Positions 3,272-64,000 of a stretch of DNA of 64,000 nucleotides are shown one piece after another. The stretch is taken from the IMG/VR virus record IMGVR_UViG_3300023174_000033, positions 310,001 through 374,000 of that record; one strand, 5' to 3'. Below the pieces are notes generated by a model. The model was given only the letters and a program-made list of their open reading frames with translations. It was not told the origin of the DNA and searched no databases. Made by a program: the position numbers and the translations under genes. The stretch's first letter is position 1; each line of letters opens with the position of its first letter.

Positions 3272-4294
3272 TTATTGTTGTTGATTTAATATTGTAATTT
3301 CTGTAGTTCCTTGTGGTGTGTAACTCATATAAATATCATAGAAATCACCATATCCATATATGTTCTCTAAATAATAATTTGATTGTATTTTTTTAAACAT
3401 ATTTACATAGAAATTATTATAGATGGTTTTTGGAAATTCAGTATAAGCCCAATCTGTAGTTGGCCAAGCTACCACTAAATGACTAGCGGTACCTATCATA
3501 TTAATACTTGTTCCGATAATTGTATATGGACTAGTTGATAAATCTGGCAATCCATTTGGACCAGTTAAGCCAAACCTATTACTAATAAGACCATCAAGTT
3601 GAACTGATTGACTAGCGGTGATAGTTCTTAAATCTGCATATGGACTTATAGAAGATAAATCAATTGAACCGTAATATCTACTATTAAACCAACTCATAGT
3701 TACAGATATTTGTCTTCCACTCATACCAGTTGTACCATCATAATCACTCACGGTGAGTGTATAAGTTGATGTTGTATTTGGTATTACACTTGCTTGAAAT
3801 GTAGAAACAGTAGTGCCGGTTGTAGGTATAGTAGGATTTACCGTATTTGGCAAATCATTCGGTACTGATAACGTACAAGAAACTATTGCGTTTGTATTTT
3901 TCGTTAGAGTTACTTGCAAATCAACCGTGGCAGTTCCACCAGGTAGGTAACCATATTCATACATAGGTGGGTTTGGTGAAACTATTTCCAATTCATACCC
4001 AACATCTTCAAATTTTAAAAACATTTTATCTAATAATTCCTGTAAAGGAACATAACTAAAAGTAGTACCTTTTGGAATACCACCTAACTCTACGGTTGAC
4101 GGTGTTAAACTTGTATAAGAGAAACTCCAAGTAGAAATTCCATAAATTTCCTCCCATAGAGTAAAACTAACATCACGTAAATTTCTGGCAGTAATTGAAC
4201 CCGTATCTTGGGATGGCAGTGTTGCCATAATTTCATCTAAACCAGTTAGTGTTTCAGAATATGTAGGATCCCCAGGAACTCCGTAAATTGCCAT
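3272..4294 (-). CDS. Virion structural protein (Ig-like/beta-rich)
   Basis: 340 aa, T/S-rich, with a TSTYTLTVSD-type strand. TAATATATA motif upstream. Confidence 0.5.
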   Translation of the reverse strand: MAIYGVPGDPTYSETLTGLDEIMATLPSQDTGSITARNLRDVSFTLWEEIYGISTWSFSYTSLTPSTVELGGIPKGTTFSYVPLQELLDKMFLKFEDVGYELEIVSPNPPMYEYGYLPGGTATVDLQVTLTKNTNAIVSCTLSVPNDLPNTVNPTIPTTGTTVSTFQASVIPNTTSTYTLTVSDYDGTTGMSGRQISVTMSWFNSRYYGSIDLSSISPYADLRTITASQSVQLDGLISNRFGLTGPNGLPDLSTSPYTIIGTSINMIGTASHLVVAWPTTDWAYTEFPKTIYNNFYVNMFKKIQSNYYLENIYGYGDFYDIYMSYTPQGTTEITILNQQQ

Positions 4295-53061: not shown

Positions 53062-53538
53062 TTAAATAAATGGATGTCTAACCTTTCTGAATTTTTCATT
53101 TTTACTCCTTAAGTACGCATAAAAATCTGCATCACCTCTATCACTATTACATTTAAGACAACAGACCACTAAATTTACTTGAGTATTATTCCCACCTTTG
53201 GAAATAGGAATGATATGATCAGTATTAGCATTTGTTTGAGTTAATTTCGTATTACAATAAAGACATTTTACATTTTTATTTTTATTTAAAAAGTCTTTAG
53301 CAAATCCACTTGTTCTTCTTTTAACTTTTTTATCGTATTTCTTTAGTCCAATTACTACAATACGTTTTGTAAGTTTGATTTTTTTCCTAAAAATCAAACA
53401 TTTTCTATAGTTTTTATTAAGCCCAACAAGTATATTTAACACAAAAGACCATCTTCTATAAAATTCCCATTCAACAGAAATATAATGCTCATCTTTTTTG
53501 AACAAAATTTCTTTGAATATTTTTAAAACACTACTCAA
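53062..53538 (-). CDS. HNH endonuclease
   Basis: CLYC...DHIIPISKGG.N...NLVVCCLKCNSDRG. Confidence 0.85.
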   Translation of the reverse strand: MSSVLKIFKEILFKKDEHYISVEWEFYRRWSFVLNILVGLNKNYRKCLIFRKKIKLTKRIVVIGLKKYDKKVKRRTSGFAKDFLNKNKNVKCLYCNTKLTQTNANTDHIIPISKGGNNTQVNLVVCCLKCNSDRGDADFYAYLRSKNEKFRKVRHPFI

Positions 53539-54648: not shown

Positions 54649-55437
54649 ATGGAACAATATTATGACCAAAAAACACTAGGTATCTCTAAACCATATAGAG
54701 ATCATTTCAATAACGATTCTTTTGAGCTTTTCAGAATACATTATCCAAATCTTTATGAAATATTTCCAAATGGATATAGACTTATTTACAAAGATTCACA
54801 AAAAACTGTAAACTCACTTTTTAATAAATTAGGCACAAACTACTCTGCTTATACCTATTTGGTTAATAGTACAATCGAACAAATGGTTAAGACTGGTGTT
54901 GTTGGAAATTCTAGTGAAATAAATCCCTTACAAGAAGATGGGTATAATTCAATAATTGATTATTTAAAGAACAATAAAGAATTCTTTAGTAGTCTTCTTC
55001 CAGAAATGGGTAAGTTAATCAATAGGTCAACTGTTATCGGAGATAGAGCAGAAGTGAGTGCTGAAGAAGTTCTTCGTAAAATATTTGGAAAAGATGTTGA
55101 AATAAGACACACTGCTGGCCTTGGACAAATGGAAGATACCCATGGTGGAAAAGATAGAGTAATTATAAAGAATGGACAGGCATATAATGTTCAAATTAAA
55201 GTTTGTGCAGGAATTGATGAAGAAAATGGAACTTATTATATCAAACATTTAGGTGCTAAATTGTACCCTAACGTAGATATTATGGTTTTCAAAAGAGGAA
55301 ATTGGTTTTATGCTTTTAGAGCAAAAGATGCAAGAGGTATCACAACATTAGAAATATTGGGTAATAGAGAAGGTTATATGATTCCTTCAATTCACAAAAT
55401 TCTGGCGACTAAATTAGAACCCGCTAAAAATATCTAA
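54649..55437 (+). CDS. Putative PD-(D/E)XK (QxK-type) endonuclease
   Basis: G...E...DTHGGKD.......VQIK. Confidence 0.4.
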   Translation: MEQYYDQKTLGISKPYRDHFNNDSFELFRIHYPNLYEIFPNGYRLIYKDSQKTVNSLFNKLGTNYSAYTYLVNSTIEQMVKTGVVGNSSEINPLQEDGYNSIIDYLKNNKEFFSSLLPEMGKLINRSTVIGDRAEVSAEEVLRKIFGKDVEIRHTAGLGQMEDTHGGKDRVIIKNGQAYNVQIKVCAGIDEENGTYYIKHLGAKLYPNVDIMVFKRGNWFYAFRAKDARGITTLEILGNREGYMIPSIHKILATKLEPAKNI

Positions 55438-56645
55438 AACAACACTTAGTCTTTTTGTGATTAGTGGCATACCAAGTGGTTCAATAATTGAATTTATTGG
55501 TGAGAGAATACACTTTTCAAATTGAGTATCCAAGTCAATCTCGGGAGCCATTTCTATTGGATAAGATCCTCTTATAAAAGCAAAAACTTCATTAACACTT
55601 TTATCTTTACAGTAATAATATTTGATTTTATCACCAGATTTAATGTATTCGTATTTGTTTTGTAAAGCTTTATTCTTATTTAATAAGAAATTGTGATAAG
55701 CAGAAGCCTTTACAGCAAAGTGGGCACCACTTACAAATTCTAACTTATCCTTATCGTTCAATACTTTTTCACCATACTTTGAACAAGATGATTGCATACA
55801 AATCTCATCAATTCTATCAGGAACACATAGGTCAAACTCTTTTTTAAGGTTCTTTACAAGTTTTAATAACTCCTTTATATTAAATGAGTCAGGATGCTCA
55901 AAAAGATATTTAACAATACCAATAATCTTATCCCTTGCAAATAGTGGTGTTGATGATCTAACAAGTTCTACACCTTTTGGGAAGATATATGACATCCTAT
56001 CATAAGGAATTCCATCTTCATATACAATATGTTGAATATACTTTTTCTTTGCAATAGAAATAATAGATTCGGAAATCCTTTCAAGTTCAAAATCTTGTTT
56101 ATTCTCAACTCCGTAAGTAGCAGCATGTTCATCTAAACACTTTTTGAAATATCCAGCATATCTATTTTTATCAAGAGCATGGATAAAATCTAACTCTGAT
56201 GAATATTGATGTTTCCACTCACAATGATCCATTGCTGGTTTGAATGATACAAATAATGAATCAGTATCTGCATAAATAGAAACTTCTTCACCCCTTGGAA
56301 TTGGTGTGACATTTTTAAGGTTCATTGCTTGGTGAAGTTCTGTATCTAAGTGCCATTGATTATACCAATAGTCCTCATTTACTTGGTTCATTGTTTGAGT
56401 AAGATTACGACCTTCTGCTGTGATTGTACCAGCTACATAGTTGTTAAACAAAATGAAATAAGGTGCGGCGAATGCTCCGTCCTGTGGTGCCCCCTCACCC
56501 GAAGATGAGGGGGCTAAAAGTAGGACCCATTAAGTACGAGCTTCAATCCGGTCTGTAAAGCGTTGTAATATTCAACATCCCTTTTAAGTTCCGAAGCTTG
56601 TCTTTTTAGGTCCTCTAATTTTTTAATTTTTGACTCTTTTGACAT
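55414..56645 (-). CDS. Family-B DNA polymerase C-terminal subunit (fingers-palm-thumb), interrupted by a 41-nt element: join(56645..56520, 56478..55414), 396 aa
   Basis: The 5' part MSKESK...QTGLKLVLNGSY and the 3' part GAFAAPYF...ITAEGR together give motif B. Motif C YADTDS, KKKY and KGVELVRSSTP are present. Confidence 0.85.
56479..56519 (-). other. 41-nt intervening element (mini-intron or ribosomal bypass sequence) in polymerase motif B
   Basis: TTTTA-GCCCCCTCATC-TTCG-GGTGAGGGGGC-ACCAC-AGGAC. It has an in-frame TAG, an 11-bp cUUCGg hairpin and an AC terminal repeat, and its removal restores TAC GGA (YG). Confidence 0.8.
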
Positions 56646-56711
56646 AGGAATTTTATAAAAAAACACCGAAAAGTTTAACAGGAACCCATGGGGCTTTTAT
56701 ATATATATCTT

Positions 56712-57563
56712 ATGCTTAAATCAGAAAAAATAACAATACCAATATCATATAGAAATGTAAGTCACTACATGAAATTGGGTTATGATGCTAAAATAAATCA
56801 AGACTTGGAAATTTATGTCAAAGACTTACCAGCAGTATCCCATGTGAAGATAAATGTCATTTGTGAAATTTGTAAAATAGAAAAGAATTTGATGTATTGT
56901 AAATATTTAAAAAATAAAAGCATGCATGGGTTTTATGGATGTAAATCTTGTTCGAGACAAAAAGCAGTTCTTACTAGTAGACAGATGTACGGCGTAGATA
57001 ATTGGATGCAGTTAGAAGAATCAAAAAAAATTATAAGTCAAAGAAATATAGAAAAGTATGGTGTTAAAACTACATTATTAGTAAGTGAAACTCAGGATAA
57101 AATATCCAAAACCATGATGTCAAAATATAATACCGATAAATGGTATGAAATAAGAACTCCGAATACGAAAAAATTTGTTTTCAAAAATTTAGAATCCAAG
57201 GAATTCATATTTGAAAATCCAGAGGAACAATATGTAGATATTTATGATGAAAATTACTACACTTATAGAACTGAAGTAAGGAGAATAACAAAGAGGAATC
57301 AAAAAAAATTGTTCAAAGAGTGGGATGGTTACGATCATTATGATGGTGAATACATTAAGGAAAACTTAACATTAACACCGAATCATAAAGATTATCCATC
57401 AGTAGACCACAAAATTTCCATTTATCATGGATACAAAAATAATTTACATCCAACAATAATAGGGGATTTATCAAATTTATGTATAACTAAAATTAAGATA
57501 AATTCAGCTAAAAGGGATTTGATAGAGGAACAATTCTTACAAATTTTTCAAACTCCAAAATAA
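56712..57563 (+). CDS. Free-standing HNH-type (homing) endonuclease with a zinc ribbon
   Basis: CEIC...CKSC, YGVDN/KYGV repeats and a C-terminal SVDHKISI..G......IG..SNL.......NSAK. Likely ATG at 56712. Confidence 0.7.
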   Translation: MLKSEKITIPISYRNVSHYMKLGYDAKINQDLEIYVKDLPAVSHVKINVICEICKIEKNLMYCKYLKNKSMHGFYGCKSCSRQKAVLTSRQMYGVDNWMQLEESKKIISQRNIEKYGVKTTLLVSETQDKISKTMMSKYNTDKWYEIRTPNTKKFVFKNLESKEFIFENPEEQYVDIYDENYYTYRTEVRRITKRNQKKLFKEWDGYDHYDGEYIKENLTLTPNHKDYPSVDHKISIYHGYKNNLHPTIIGDLSNLCITKIKINSAKRDLIEEQFLQIFQTPK

Positions 57564-58888
57564 TTAAAAGGTGTTATCAATTTCAATTCATTTTTAACAG
57601 AATCACTAACCTTTAACCCTTCAATAAAGTTCCAAATATCTGACCTTTCAATTTTATCCCTACCTCTAGTTAAATCCTTGAGAGCTTCATAAGGTTTTGG
57701 ATATTTTTCCCTCCTTAGAATTGTTTGGATTCCTTCAGATATAACTACCCAATTGTTTTCCAAGTCTTCATCTATTTTTACCTTGTTGATTACTAATTTA
57801 TCCAAACCTTTCATTATAGAATTAAAGCTTATTTTAATATGTGACATTGGTACACCAATATTTCTCAAAACTGTGGAATCAGTTAAATCCCTCTGTAACC
57901 TACTAATAGGTAACTTTTCTGACAAGTGATTCAGTAAGGAATTGGAAAGTCCTAGATTGCCTTCAGCATTTTCAAAATCAATTGGATTTACTTTATGTGG
58001 CATTGCTGATGATCCAACCTCACCTTCTTTTAACTTTTGTTTGAAATAATCCATTGAAATATACTGCCAAATATCTTTACACAAGTCCAAAAGGATAACA
58101 TTTATTCTTTTTAGGTTATCAAATAGAGCTGAAAGATTGTCATAATGTTCAATTTGTGTGGTATACTGATATCTCTTCAAACCCATACTTGATAGAAATT
58201 CGTTTGAGAATTTAACCCAATCAACATTTGGATAAGCTACAATATGAGCATTGAAATTTCCGGTAGCTCCGCCAAATTTTCCACGAAATTTAATTTGTTC
58301 AATCATTTCAAGCTGATTTTTTAACCTTTCTACAAAGACCATAAGTTCCTTGCCCATTCTTGATGGAGATGCTGGTTGACCATGAGTCCTTGTTAGTATC
58401 ACTATATCATTTGTATCTTCTGCTAGTGATTCAATCTTATCAATTAACTTATGTAAATCAACAATATAGATATTTTGAAACCATTTTCTAATCATTAGAG
58501 GTATAGCTGTATTGTTAATATCTTGTGAGGTAAGTCCAAAATGAACGAATTCTTTATACTCACCCAAACCTACGGTATTAATTTTTTCTTTTAGAAAATA
58601 TTCAAGAGCTTTTACATCATGATTTATTTCTTTTTCAATTTTTTTGATTAGAAAAGCTTCTTCAAGATCAAAATTATTGTAGATGCTTTTTAGTTGGTTT
58701 CGTTGTACATCTTCAAGTATAAAATCAGAGATAATTTTTTTATCAAATAGTAAAATAAAGTATTCAATTTCAACATACAATCTCCATTTTAATAATGCAA
58801 ATTCAGAGAAATAACTTGATAAAGGTTTGGTTTGACTATTATATCTGCCATCTATGGGTGATATATTGAGTAATTCATTATAATCCAT
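57548..58888 (-). CDS. purB: Adenylosuccinate lyase
   Basis: ISPIDGRY, NHDVKA, HFGLTSQDIN, RTHGQPA, GSSAMPHKVNPIDFEN and SRLQRDLTDSTV. ATG at 58888. Confidence 0.95.
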   Translation of the reverse strand: MDYNELLNISPIDGRYNSQTKPLSSYFSEFALLKWRLYVEIEYFILLFDKKIISDFILEDVQRNQLKSIYNNFDLEEAFLIKKIEKEINHDVKALEYFLKEKINTVGLGEYKEFVHFGLTSQDINNTAIPLMIRKWFQNIYIVDLHKLIDKIESLAEDTNDIVILTRTHGQPASPSRMGKELMVFVERLKNQLEMIEQIKFRGKFGGATGNFNAHIVAYPNVDWVKFSNEFLSSMGLKRYQYTTQIEHYDNLSALFDNLKRINVILLDLCKDIWQYISMDYFKQKLKEGEVGSSAMPHKVNPIDFENAEGNLGLSNSLLNHLSEKLPISRLQRDLTDSTVLRNIGVPMSHIKISFNSIMKGLDKLVINKVKIDEDLENNWVVISEGIQTILRREKYPKPYEALKDLTRGRDKIERSDIWNFIEGLKVSDSVKNELKLITPFNYFGV

Positions 58889-58889
58889 A

Positions 58890-59669
58890 TCAATCTGTTG
58901 AAAAATCTTGTTCAAATGATAACATAAGATTTGATTCATCATCTTTTATAAGAATGAAGTTTTCAAATATGTTGAATTTTATATCTCCCTTATCTAAATC
59001 AATATTAGATAAGTATTTCTTGTTAAACATAATGTGTTGATTTGAAACTTGAACATCATCAACCTCCAATTCCCATTTTGAAATTTCGCTAAAAAAAACT
59101 TTGTTGGTTTGAACATTGATGTTGAGAATTCTATCTTCGTTATTGATTGTAGAAAGTTTTTTTATACTAGTGAAATCTTCCAAACTCACTGTGAAATTCC
59201 ATTTAGATTTTTTCAAATCAAGTTTGGTGTCAATGAATTTCTTATTCAAGTCTCTTATTTTGTGCAATTCAGCTCCTATTGATGAAATCTTTAATTTACC
59301 ATTATGTAAGTGAATAGTTCTAATTTGAAATAAGTTATCTTCATCAGGTACTGTTTTAGCACTTAATTCAAGTTTTATGGATTTTTTTGGGTCAAAGAAT
59401 TTTATATTCTTTACGAATTTAGATGAAGATGTTAAAACAAAATCGTAATTCTCTTCCTCCTCAAAGTTTGAGATATACGTTTTAGTATCCAATAAAAAAC
59501 ATTTCATAGCGGAAACTTGTCCCTCATTACCCAAGATTGAGTAAATCAAGATATGGTCTTTTGAAATTTTCATCTTTATTGTATCTTCAATTCCGGTTAG
59601 ATCTTGTAATTTATCCACAAAAGCGAGGAAATTATCAGAGTTCATAATAAGATTCAGTTTTTTCAACAT
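58890..59669 (-). CDS. Sliding clamp / polymerase processivity factor (gp45/PCNA-like)
   Basis: 259 aa two-domain alpha/beta pattern, in the same strand run as the polymerase. Confidence 0.5.
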   Translation of the reverse strand: MLKKLNLIMNSDNFLAFVDKLQDLTGIEDTIKMKISKDHILIYSILGNEGQVSAMKCFLLDTKTYISNFEEEENYDFVLTSSSKFVKNIKFFDPKKSIKLELSAKTVPDEDNLFQIRTIHLHNGKLKISSIGAELHKIRDLNKKFIDTKLDLKKSKWNFTVSLEDFTSIKKLSTINNEDRILNINVQTNKVFFSEISKWELEVDDVQVSNQHIMFNKKYLSNIDLDKGDIKFNIFENFILIKDDESNLMLSFEQDFSTD

Positions 59670-62800: not shown

Positions 62801-64000
62801 TATTATGATATCTACAATATTGACCACACAAATTGGTTTGCACAAATAGAAAACTTCGTTCAAAATAATCAAGTAACATATTTATACGTTATTGAAGAAG
62901 GAAATAGCCCGGTTAGAGGTTTATACAGAGTAGACGAAGTTTTTGATAATGGTAGTTTGGGATATGACCTAGGTGTATATCCAATAATATTCGGAGGAAC
63001 CTTCACAAATGGTGTTACTTATTCAATTACTTGGGTTGCTAATGGATCAATGGGTACAACTGGTTCACAAGGTGATATAGGTCCTCAAGGTGATTTCGGA
63101 CCACAAGGTGAGATGGGATTACAAGGGGATATGGGTCCACAAGGTTTCCAAGGTGAAACTGGCCCTCAAGGTTTCCAAGGCGATATGGGACCTCAGGGAG
63201 ACCAAGGTGATATGGGACCTCAAGGTTTCCAAGGAATAATTGGTTTCCAAGGTCAAACTGGACCACAGGGTAGAATGGGTAATACCGGTCTACAGGGTTA
63301 TTCTGGGCCACAAGGTGATACTGGTATTCAAGGTGAAACTGGACCACAAGGTTTCCAAGGTGATTTTGGTTTACAGGGTATGCAAGGTCCTTTAGGAAAC
63401 CCAGCACTTAATATAACTTTCGGACCAACAACTTCAATTTCTGTAACACATAGTAGTTCAGTATATCCTTTGATTCAATTAATTGATACATTTGGAAATA
63501 CTTTCATACCAAACAGCATTATACACACATCTACATCTGAATTTATTTTGAATTTTGCTACTGAATCAAGTGGTACTATAATAATTGGAGGTGGAGCTGG
63601 CCCTCAGGGGGAAATGGGTGTTCAAGGTTATCAAGGGGAAATTGGACCTCAAGGAGACATCGGATTCCAAGGAATTAGCGGACCACAAGGTGAAATGGGT
63701 GTTCAAGGTTATCAAGGAGATATTGGTCCACAAGGTGATATTGGTTTCCAAGGTATTAGTGGTCCACAAGGAGATATGGGACCACAAGGTTATCAAGGTG
63801 ATATGGGTCCACAGGGTAACGAAGGGTTACAAGGTGTTTCTGGACCACAAGGTGACCAAGGTTTGGAAGGTCCACAAGGTGATATGGGTCCACAGGGTGA
63901 CCAAGGTTTTCAAGGTGAAACTGGGCCTCAAGGTTTCCAAGGTTTAGAAGGTCCACAAGGAGATATGGGACCACAGGGTGACCAAGGTTTACAGGGTGTT
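59801..64000 (+). CDS. Collagen-like fibre protein, partial (>1400 aa, runs off the right edge)
   Basis: ATG at 59801 after TAATATATA ([12 protein letters not shown]...), with in-frame Gly-X-Y (GPQGxx) tracts. Missing from the ORF track because there is no stop in the window. Confidence 0.9.
61001..64000 (+). repeat. Gly-X-Y coding repeats (ggwccwcaagg units)
   Basis: Four tracts: ~61001-62143, 62531-62677, 63044-63403 and 63599-64000. Confidence 0.9.

Follow-up and report, generated by a model that had tools for sequence, protein, structure and literature searches.

How does a huge lake phage make its DNA polymerase when the active-site motif of the polymerase gene is interrupted by a stop codon and a change of frame? 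The question was raised by a 64 000-nt stretch of DNA (positions 310,001 to 374,000 of the IMG/VR record IMGVR_UViG_3300023174_000033; hereafter, the window), in which an initial annotation made from the sequence alone noted a 41-nt GC-rich hairpin splitting motif B of a family B DNA polymerase (PolB) gene, and proposed that it was either a mini-intron or the site of a ribosomal hop. Here we asked whether the interruption is real, whether it occurs in related phages, and whether it can be explained by the known ways of skipping a non-coding segment. We find that the observation is correct, and that the insert belongs to a widespread family of hairpin gaps associated with a homing endonuclease gene, which ribosomes most likely hop over.

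Results

The reading frames were examined first. On the minus strand, ATG 56645–56643 opens a first exon of 42 codons (56520–56645; MSKESKIKKLEDLKRQASELKRDVEYYNALQTGLKLVLNGSY), ending ...AAU GGG UCC UAC (UAC at 56522–56520). This is followed by UUU UAG (56519–56514), with the zero-frame UAG at 56514–56516 lying two codons after UAC and followed by C. GGA GCA UUC resumes at 56478 in the −1 frame, and this second exon (55414–56478) stays open for 354 codons to the stop at 55416–55414, giving 396 aa when joined. The extra stretch, 56479–56519, is 41 nt long and consists of UUUUAG, the hairpin and then CACCACAGGAC. The second exon begins GAFAAPYF, the rest of motif B, contains motif C (YADTDS), and was identified as DNA polymerase by Pfam (DNA_pol_B, 8.8e-13) and by PHROG families phrog_1918 and phrog_262. 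The homologous leader encoded by the first exon is present in all relatives. In the uninterrupted homologues LR745206 and LR756502 the sequence ...AAC GGA AGU UAU GGA GCA UUC... is contiguous, so the 41 nt are a precise insertion between the Y and G codons of motif B (KxxxNSxYG). LR745206 (locus L001 in our set of polymerase loci) aligns over this stretch with HSV polymerase region III.

The insert is strongly structured. Positions 56514 to 56489 (minus strand) form an 11-bp stem (G + CCCCCUCAUC / GGUGAGGGGG + C) with one G.U pair and a cUUCGg loop, and the C-run starts 6 nt after UAC. An outer helix, pairing GUCCU (56526–56522) with AGGAC (56483–56479) at the 3′ end of the gap, brings the two junctions together and is part of the minimum-energy fold (−37.4 kcal/mol, z = −2.9, 0 of 200 shuffles as good). 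The insert lies in the most GC-rich stretch of the 31%-GC window (73% over 59 nt); it is unique there, with no other copy and no comparable GC island.

An assembly artefact had been named in advance as an outcome that would overturn the observation, and we looked for it in independent assemblies. Logan contigs from two other studies carry the insert with zero differences: run X2, record 15 (56447–56709), and run X4, records 28 (56324–56508) and 29 (56511–56691). No contig skips it. The presumed source run, X1, returned only diverged contigs over this stretch, and the confirmation rests on X2 and X4. A second, intact copy of the subunit with decay of this one had likewise been listed as a refutation; no second copy of this gene (polC) and no N-terminal PolB subunit gene is present in the window, which is the only part of the 464.6-kb genome that was searched.

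Next we compared homologous polymerase loci for presence or absence of the insert and for covariation of its stem, as the initial annotation had suggested. The insert is not unique. We found 48 distinct gaps of 36–49 nt, at six sites within ten codons of motif B, in dozens of related freshwater huge phages, and removal of the gap restores ALQLALKLVLNGSY exactly, followed by G, in 72 of 72 gap-bearing loci. Both exons are under purifying selection in the gap-bearing genomes, with pN/pS of 0.25 and 0.13. Gap lengths show no bias towards multiples of three (mod 3: 21, 17, 10). All 17 gaps that are multiples of three contain an in-frame stop, and 11 of the other 31 are blocked in both frames, so 28 of 48 cannot be crossed by read-through or a single frameshift. 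Further sites found later are described below.

The gaps share a common anatomy. A C-run/G-run hairpin begins 5–7 nt after the last codon of the first exon, and 38 distinct stem arms all keep pairing; in 14 of 48 an extended stem begins right after that codon. The loops are UUCG or GNRA, as in gene 60 cassettes (Manning & Atkins, bioRxiv 10.1101/2022.08.31.505936). A stop lies one codon into the gap in only 6 of 48 and two codons into it in 34 of 48, so that 40 of 48 have an early stop, which is followed by C in 32 of 40. The 3′ tail is A-rich and varies, with the 3′ junction 0–13 nt from the stem, while the 5′ geometry is fixed. This is expected if position matters at take-off and the landing site is found by pairing. 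All take-offs lie 31–48 codons from the start.

We then tested whether the proposed take-off and landing codons could be decoded by the same tRNA. The last triplet of the gap is synonymous with the take-off codon in 36 of 48, against 0 of 48 at offsets 1–6. In four-codon families the pattern is NNU (take-off) to NNA (landing), and for Tyr it is UAU to UAC. Loci L010 and L027 have nearly identical hairpins and an identical UAAAUGA tail, yet take-off and landing are shifted together by one codon (CUU..CUA against GCU..GCA), and the sites found later also match (GGU..GGU and GUU..GUA). In the window, however, the proposed take-off codon UAC (Tyr42, the last codon shared with uninterrupted homologues; 56520–56522) faces the landing triplet GAC (56479–56481), immediately 5′ of GGA, which is only near-cognate for tRNA-Tyr (positions 2 and 3 pair). 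The family and the window thus give different answers, and for this locus the comparison does not settle the point either way. The closest relatives, L054 and L055, have UAU/GAU and keep the outer helix with one G.U pair. The unmatched landing triplet is a minority variant (12 of 19 at the window's own site, site A; 12 of 48 overall), the non-cognate triplets being GAC, GAU, AAC, AAU, UAA, AGC, AAA and UCA.

Other hops were considered and rejected. In the window, GGG to GGA would delete SYG and UUU to UUC would delete GA, and in either case motif B would be lost. Take-off from the codon next to the stop (UUU, GUU or GCU) has no matching landing triplet in any tail. Take-off one codon earlier was rejected because the triplets at offset 3 never match.

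Beside the polymerase gene, across a 42-bp divergent intergenic spacer (56646–56687), lies a divergently transcribed free-standing homing endonuclease gene on the plus strand (56688–57563, 291 aa). The protein has N-terminal Cys-rich modules and a C-terminal HNH-type nuclease; it matches DUF7487 and phrog_12131 (homing endonuclease, 3.6e-12), residues D240, H241, N263 and N272 are invariant, and its top fold matches are HNH domains. It also hits Lactococcus-phage homing endonucleases but not T4, and NCBIfam gave no match. The endonuclease is present in 47 of 65 gap-bearing loci and 3 of 25 gap-less loci. The gap site follows the endonuclease tree (7 changes, shuffled mean 11, 0 of 200 shuffles as low) but is nearly random on the polymerase tree (34 changes against 38), and L027 and L028 have identical polymerases but different gap sites. 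The endonuclease and the insert therefore show the co-occurrence, co-inheritance and patchy distribution among close relatives of a homing endonuclease with a protective target-site insert, although cleavage and immunity were not assayed.

To see whether the gaps extend beyond polC, we examined other copies of the endonuclease. The homologue in LR756501 lies about 20 kb from polC and has no hairpin gap beside it, and among 80 further homologues from IMG/VR, C-run hairpin gaps were found only beside polC. That scan required a C-run stem, so other gap types could have been missed. No Rfam family matched the insert, and no terminator-like site was found on either strand, which, with gap lengths that are not multiples of three and stops inside the gaps, does not fit an intrinsic terminator (a hairpin followed by a U-run) or a translated in-frame palindromic insert of the RPE type.

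Discussion

The 41 nt are best explained as a coding gap that translating ribosomes skip by programmed translational bypassing, so that one 396-aa PolB C-terminal subunit with an intact motif B is made; we put the probability of this reading at about 0.6. What our data show directly is the anatomy of the gap and its conservation, the matched codons, the link to the endonuclease and the mobility of the gap, while each step of the following mechanism is inferred. In this view the ribosome translates 42 codons, a leader that would be inside or just emerging from the ribosome at take-off. With peptidyl-tRNA-Tyr on UAC in the P site, the very stable C5/G5-based hairpin beginning 6 nt downstream would block further decoding or translocation. 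Hairpins near the mRNA entry channel block A-site tRNA binding whatever the codon (eLife 2020, PMC7282821). The peptidyl-tRNA would leave its codon and pass over the folded hairpin, making the effective hop short, then re-pair at the last triplet of the A-rich tail, a synonymous codon in most family members but the near-cognate GAC in the window, and decoding would resume at GGA. Ribosomes that fail to take off would terminate at the UAG. By analogy with T4 mobA/gene 60, we infer that the gap travels with the adjacent HNH homing endonuclease as one mobile cassette and, by interrupting the highly conserved motif-B DNA, probably makes the carrier genome immune to that endonuclease.

Several features fit this reading less well. 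Metatranscriptome reads across the junction had been proposed as the test between splicing and bypass, but no RNA run examined contains the locus: X23–25, from the same study, share none of the sampled words, X26 gave only scraps of relatives away from the junction, and neither ribosome profiling nor proteomic data for the junction peptide LVLNGSYGAFAAPYF were available, so bypass and splicing were not separated directly. In the window and in 11 other site-A gaps the landing triplet is not cognate. Because the stop is usually at codon +2, the A-site codon at take-off is an ordinary sense codon (UUU in the window), which differs from gene 60, and the hairpin starts 5–6 nt downstream and does not include the take-off codon. 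The likely hosts are Bacteroidota (the nearest cultured relative infects Chryseobacterium) and genes there show no Shine–Dalgarno (SD) sequence, so an SD-assisted landing is doubtful. The matched flanking codons could partly reflect 2–3-bp target-site duplication. Finally, an essential polymerase needs efficient skipping, and gene 60 reaches only about 50%.

The interpretation offered in the initial annotation is partly supported. It was right that the element is a precise 41-nt interruption of motif B that must be skipped precisely, that it is far too small to self-splice, that T4 gene 60 is the right comparison, that UAC and GAC are not cognate, and that a UUU-to-UUC hop or a −1 shift would damage the motif. 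It lacked the family context, which makes an essentially gene-60-like hop the best explanation rather than the new mechanism it had suggested. The group I boundary rule (exon-U| ... G|), which it noted that one register fits, does not hold across relatives; for example, the gap of L011 ends in ...UUUAA.

The strongest alternative, although unlikely, is excision at the RNA level, with the hairpin marking a protein-dependent mini-intron that is cut out by a phage or host endonuclease and rejoined by an RNA ligase. This is weakened but not excluded. It would be consistent with skipping that is precise and independent of frame and length, with the 12 of 48 gaps lacking a cognate landing triplet, with the 8 of 48 lacking an early stop, and with the outer helix that brings the junctions together in the window. 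However, boundary nucleotides are not conserved, and gaps of 36–49 nt without an Rfam ribozyme or intron match are not group I or group II introns, which have a conserved catalytic core of 200 nt or more. The fixed 5′ but variable 3′ distance to the stem does not suit a structure-measuring nuclease or an archaeal-type bulge-helix-bulge motif (two 3-nt bulges separated by a 4-bp helix, with cut sites at fixed positions), the latter compared by eye only, without a dedicated motif scan. Nor does excision explain why the last triplet is synonymous with the preceding exon codon, why stops are kept at codon +1 or +2, or why every gap lies within about 45 codons of the start. No mRNA splicing of this type is known in bacteria or phages.

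It is improbable that translation ends at the stop and re-initiates after the hairpin, to give a 33–44-aa peptide and an N-terminally truncated subunit that assemble non-covalently. PolB is already split into two genes in this clade, and a G-run 5–9 nt before the landing triplet resembles SD spacing. However, the landing triplets are not start codons (CUA, GCA, GUA, UCA, UAC, GAC), break points at six different positions inside one alpha-helix of the active site are implausible for a split protein, and the genes of these phages lack SD sequences.

A −1 frameshift specific to the window, near C UUU UAG, is very unlikely. The exon-2 frame is open for 51 nt upstream of the junction and overlaps the zero frame, but there is no canonical slippery heptamer, the hairpin is only 3 nt from UUU (stimulators lie 5–9 nt downstream), and the product would carry about 15 extra residues between Y and G of motif B, reading ...SYFLAPSSSGEGAPQDGAF rather than NGSYGAF. 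L054 and L055 carry a homologous 39-nt gap with an in-frame UAG that cannot use this route, and neither can the 28 of 48 family members noted above. A dead gene or an assembly or sequencing artefact, suggested on its face by the stop and frame change, is very unlikely given the identical insert in two independent studies, the 48 distinct variants in large intact phage contigs with both exons under purifying selection and no other lesion, and the absence of a second polC copy from the window, although the rest of the 464.6-kb genome was not searched.

Until now, efficient long-range translational bypassing in phages rested on one homologous family, T4 gene 60; a 2022 survey called that cassette unique and found no similar bypassing in other phages. 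Our literature searches found no description of the polymerase case. If our reading is correct, which we consider somewhat more likely than not, this is a second, independently evolved family and only the second such system known in phages, in which an HNH homing endonuclease and a hairpin coding gap move together and repeatedly re-insert at six sites within the motif-B codons of PolB, and in which the ribosome hops over a folded hairpin without needing a stop in the A site and, in a quarter of cases, without a cognate landing codon. If the skipping is instead done on the RNA, the element would be a new kind of protein-dependent mini-intron in bacterial viruses, which would be more novel still. 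A non-homologous family with about 50 natural variants, differing in take-off codon, spacing, loop, tail and whether the landing is matched, and in likely hosts that do not use SD sequences, gives a comparative data set for asking what bypassing really needs. It would also point to a general strategy, in which a homing endonuclease can invade next to an essential, highly conserved motif and protect its carrier by planting an untranslated hairpin inside the active-site codons. In practical terms, the polymerase C-terminal subunit of many huge freshwater phages will be called as a truncated gene or a pseudogene unless the gap is recognised.

Comparison with known systems

The closest known system is the T4 gene 60/mobA cassette, with its 50-nt coding gap in the split topoisomerase II large-subunit gene. 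In both, a non-coding gap of a few tens of nt sits 33–46 codons into the downstream half of a split, essential DNA-metabolism gene (gene 60 take-off is at codon 46), take-off and landing codons are matched (here in 36 of 48 gaps, but only near-cognate in the window) with third-position differences read by one tRNA, a stop at the start of the gap is followed by C, and a very stable stem-loop carries UUCG or GNRA loops. Both are physically linked to a free-standing HNH-type homing endonuclease, and the distribution is patchy and recent-looking, with some genomes keeping the gap but having lost the endonuclease. The differences are that the gene is PolB, interrupted in motif B, rather than Topo2L in its Toprim domain; that no homology to MobA was detected, only the HNH fold class being shared; and that the endonuclease is divergently oriented and intergenic and did not cause the gene split, which is ancestral to the clade. 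There are six insertion sites rather than one (plus or minus one codon), the hairpin starts 5–6 nt after the take-off codon rather than containing it, the stop is mostly at codon +2, and a quarter of the gaps, including that of the window, lack a cognate landing codon. The leader peptide is a native part of the protein, equally present in gap-less relatives; whether it acts as a nascent-peptide signal for take-off was not measured. The likely host is Bacteroidota.

The mitochondrial byps of the yeast Magnusiomyces capitatus, translationally bypassed inserts of 27–55 nt, are also short GC-rich hairpins in AT-rich coding DNA, of any length modulo three, with many variants that look like miniature mobile elements. 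Byps, however, occur at 81 sites in 12 genes of one organelle, are not linked to a homing endonuclease, and have an unassigned or stop codon after take-off, whereas here the gaps are confined to about 10 codons of one gene and none were found beside 60+ other copies of the endonuclease family. Lastly, the frameshift-stimulating hairpins of dnaX and HIV, which dock in the ribosomal A site (eLife 2020, PMC7282821), show that a stable stem-loop at a fixed short distance 3′ of the P-site codon can block A-site tRNA binding and translocation whatever the codons are. Those hairpins act at 11–12 nt from the first P-site nucleotide and cause single-nucleotide shifts, while here the stem base lies at about +9 or +10 and the outcome would be a hop of 36–49 nt.

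A precise insertion within motif B

On the minus strand, ATG 56645 opens 42 codons encoding MSKESKIKKLEDLKRQASELKRDVEYYNALQTGLKLVLNGSY, the last of which is UAC at 56522-56520 and is followed by UUU UAG. After 41 nt in all (56519-56479), GGA GCA UUC GCC resumes in another frame and stays open for 354 codons to the stop at 55416-55414. The second exon matches Pfam DNA_pol_B and two PHROG DNA polymerase families, and an uninterrupted homologue aligns its QLALKLVLNGSYGAF with region III (motif B) of herpesvirus polymerase and its YGDTDS with motif C. The insert folds as described in the initial annotation, into an 11-bp stem with a cUUCGg loop enclosed by the GUCCU/AGGAC helix (z = -2.9), and the observation made there was confirmed. 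It is the most GC-rich stretch of a 31%-GC window, in which it is unique. The contig, IMG/VR 3300023174_000033, is a 464.6-kb phage from lake water.

We next asked whether the insert could be an assembly artefact, which had been set out in advance as grounds for discarding it. The two closest GenBank relatives, the huge-phage assemblies LR745206 and LR756502, read AAC GGA AGU UAU GGA GCA UUC with no break. Assembled contigs from two other studies contain the window's version with zero differences across both junctions, and nothing in the four runs examined skips it, which rules out an assembly artefact, although this is not raw-read evidence and says nothing about RNA. Over 55300-57000, the run flagged as the likely source of the window (X1) returned only diverged contigs (under 95% alike), while the unrelated runs X2 and X4 returned identical ones; the filter applied drops some records. 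An intact second copy of the subunit with this one decaying was also named beforehand as a reason to reject the element; a second copy was sought in only 64 kb of the genome and was not found there.

PolB is split into N- and C-terminal genes across the whole clade, including a cultured Bacteroidota phage, Chryseobacterium phage MA9V-2 (loci L133/L134; OR513085.1 149314-155537). In that phage three genes, one of them a TnpB, separate the halves, while in locus L045 the halves are adjacent; the N-terminal half is not in the window. Many relatives carry an extra segment of about 75 aa in the C-terminal subunit shortly after motif C (3280-3520 in each of loci L001 and L002), which the window's protein lacks, and this is why tblastn matches came in two pieces.

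A family of gaps at related loci

Two collection scans with the exon-2 protein returned 127 related loci. The loci were anchored on the YYN motif upstream and the GGA downstream, and we then asked which split of the 14 intervening codons best rebuilds the consensus peptide. The junction resolved in 108 loci, of which 72 were gap-bearing (48 distinct gaps) and 36 were uninterrupted (29 distinct flanks). In every gap-bearing locus, removal of the gap restores ALQLALKLVLNGSY or a conservative variant. The gaps lie at five sites in this set, after QLA, QLAL, KLV, NGS and NGSY, and a sixth site, after NG, was found later. No rigorous count of independent events was made, and many elements at one site may descend from one insertion. 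Lengths run from 36 to 49 nt with no preference for multiples of three. All 17 gaps whose length is a multiple of three contain an in-frame stop, and 11 of the other 31 are closed in both relevant frames, so that 28 of 48 cannot be crossed by read-through or one frameshift. Both exons are under purifying selection among gap-bearing genomes (uncorrected pN/pS 0.25 and 0.13). We therefore conclude, without RNA or protein data, that the gene is expressed as one reading unit and that the gap must be skipped on the RNA or on the ribosome.

The distinct gaps share a common anatomy. A run of four to six C starts 5-7 nt after the last exon codon and pairs with a G-run, forming stems of 9-16 bp at -17 to -31 kcal/mol, with a median z of -6.4 against shuffles. 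Stem covariation, a comparison that had been proposed when the element was first noted, is evident: there are 38 different stem arms among 48 elements and several Watson-Crick pair types occur at each inner position, so the pairing is conserved and the sequence is not. Loops are often GNRA (18 of 48), while the window's is UUCG. The first or second codon of the gap is a stop in 40 of 48, and that stop is followed by C in 32 of those 40. The 3' tail is 54% A, and the G-run ends 5-9 nt before the last triplet in 41 of 45.

The last triplet of the gap is synonymous with the preceding exon codon in 36 of 48, whereas at any of six control offsets the count is 0 of 48. The observed pairs are CUU/CUC/CUG to CUA (19 of 19), GCU to GCA/GCU (5 of 5), GUU to GUA/GUU (4 of 4), UCU to UCA (1 of 1) and UAU to UAC/UAU (7 of 19). 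Matched codons could partly reflect target-site duplication. In four-codon families the take-off codon ends in U and the landing codon in A, which fits, by inference, one U34 tRNA pairing weakly at take-off and strongly at landing. Two gap-bearing loci, L010 and L027, carry nearly identical hairpins with an identical UAAAUGA tail, yet their take-off and landing codons are moved together by one codon (CUU..CUA against GCU..GCA). A fixed 5' geometry with a variable 3' distance is what a ribosomal hop predicts, and would not be produced by a nuclease that measures from a structure.

For the window specifically, the closest relatives (loci L054 and L055) carry a homologous gap that has diverged much faster than the exons, with a UGCG or UGUG loop and a different tail. 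It keeps the hairpin, the stop, the outer helix and, in two data points only, a take-off/landing pair that changes in parallel, UAU/GAU against UAC/GAC. Judged by eye, Ser at leader position 12 (E-S-L-K) is common in gap-bearing genes and rare in gap-less ones, which mostly have E-E-L-K, while the window has Asp (codon at 56610-56612). This may reflect co-conversion with the cassette or a nascent-peptide requirement.

Association with a predicted homing endonuclease

The ORF at 56688-57563 is transcribed divergently and starts 42 bp from the polymerase-subunit start. It matches a PHROG annotated as homing endonuclease, and its homologues in Lactococcus phages are annotated the same way. It has invariant Asp-His...Asn...Asn residues and four cysteines, and its AlphaFold model (pLDDT 83) finds HNH nuclease domains as its top structural matches, at weak E-values but consistently. 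Homologues sit at the same place in 47 of 65 gap-bearing loci that have enough upstream sequence, and in 3 of 25 gap-less ones (Fisher p = 2e-7, not corrected for relatedness). In those three gap-less loci (L056, L066 and L129) and in three gap-bearing loci (L010, L033 and L070), the endonuclease lies about 330-370 nt from the gap site, or from the equivalent position in gap-less loci, instead of about 110-200 nt. L033, L066, L070 and L129 carry a variant with a different N-terminal domain, which may have a different target; the copy in L010 is fragmented and the ORF of L056 was not listed.

On the polymerase tree the gap state is almost random, with 34 changes against 38 for shuffled labels. 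L027 and L028 have identical polymerases but different sites, and the window's relatives at over 90% identity include loci with none and with gaps at the insertion sites lettered A, C and D. On the endonuclease tree, by contrast, the gap site is clustered, with 7 changes where 5 is the minimum (shuffled mean 11, 0 of 200 shuffles as low). Endonuclease and gap therefore move together, independently of the host polymerase, and some genomes keep the gap after losing the endonuclease. The DUF7487/HNH endonuclease family, with 194 relatives found in IMG/VR, is multi-copy in several huge-phage contigs (3300023174_006137, 3300020576_007232, 3300025121_000023 and others; loci L154/L158, L147/L178 and L181/L183), and most copies lie away from polC and have no hairpin gap beside them.

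A second, classical HNH endonuclease ORF (53062-53538, minus strand; Pfam HNH_5, 2e-13) lies about 1.9 kb downstream of the polymerase subunit and is conserved at the same relative place in loci L007 and L008. An adenylosuccinate lyase (purB) gene (57548-58942, minus strand) sits between the homing endonuclease and a sliding-clamp-like gene (58890-59669), and among relatives appears at this place only in L007 and L008. A long plus-strand ORF of over 1,400 aa starts at ATG 59801 and runs off the window end at 64000. It has a beta-rich N-terminal part followed by several long collagen-like G-X-Y blocks (GPQG repeats) separated by globular modules, and is probably a tail-fibre-like protein.

Mechanism of gap skipping and comparison with known systems

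We think that translational bypassing is the most likely mechanism (probability about 0.6). The interpretation in the initial annotation, of a precisely skipped element acting as a mini-intron or ribosomal hop, was partly supported. The anatomy of the gaps, their conservation, the matched codons and the shared movement of gap and endonuclease come from the sequence comparisons themselves, while the bypass mechanism, the activity of the endonuclease and the immunity of gap-bearing DNA are inferred. RNA excision remains possible, though unlikely. It would account for the unmatched cases, but it does not explain the matched codons, the retained stops or the confinement to the first 45 codons or so, and there is no precedent or recognisable motif. 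A -1 shift is open in the window but not in its nearest relatives or in most of the family. Termination and re-initiation into two polypeptides, and a dead gene, fit poorly.

Full-text literature searches found no description of a coding gap in a phage DNA polymerase. The architecture is that described for T4 mobA/gene 60, in which a homing endonuclease lies next to a split essential gene and a short non-coding gap lies about 46 codons into the downstream ORF. There the gap disrupts the endonuclease's target and is bypassed by ribosomes using matched codons, a stop, a UUCG/GNRA hairpin and an A/U-rich 3' part (Manning & Atkins, preprint; Atkins et al. 2016).

The differences from gene 60 are real. 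The gene is different and so, as far as sequence searches show, is the endonuclease lineage. The probable hosts are Bacteroidota; the nearest cultured relative infects Chryseobacterium and has the same split PolB. Start regions show no Shine-Dalgarno sequence. Twelve gaps, including the window's (UAC/GAC), have only near- or non-cognate landing triplets. The hairpin does not contain the take-off codon, and the stop is mostly one codon further on, so that the A-site codon is an ordinary sense codon. Work on frameshift hairpins shows that a stem-loop near the mRNA entrance can block A-site tRNA binding whatever the codon (PMC7282821), which could explain why no A-site stop is needed, but the spacing here is 2-3 nt shorter.
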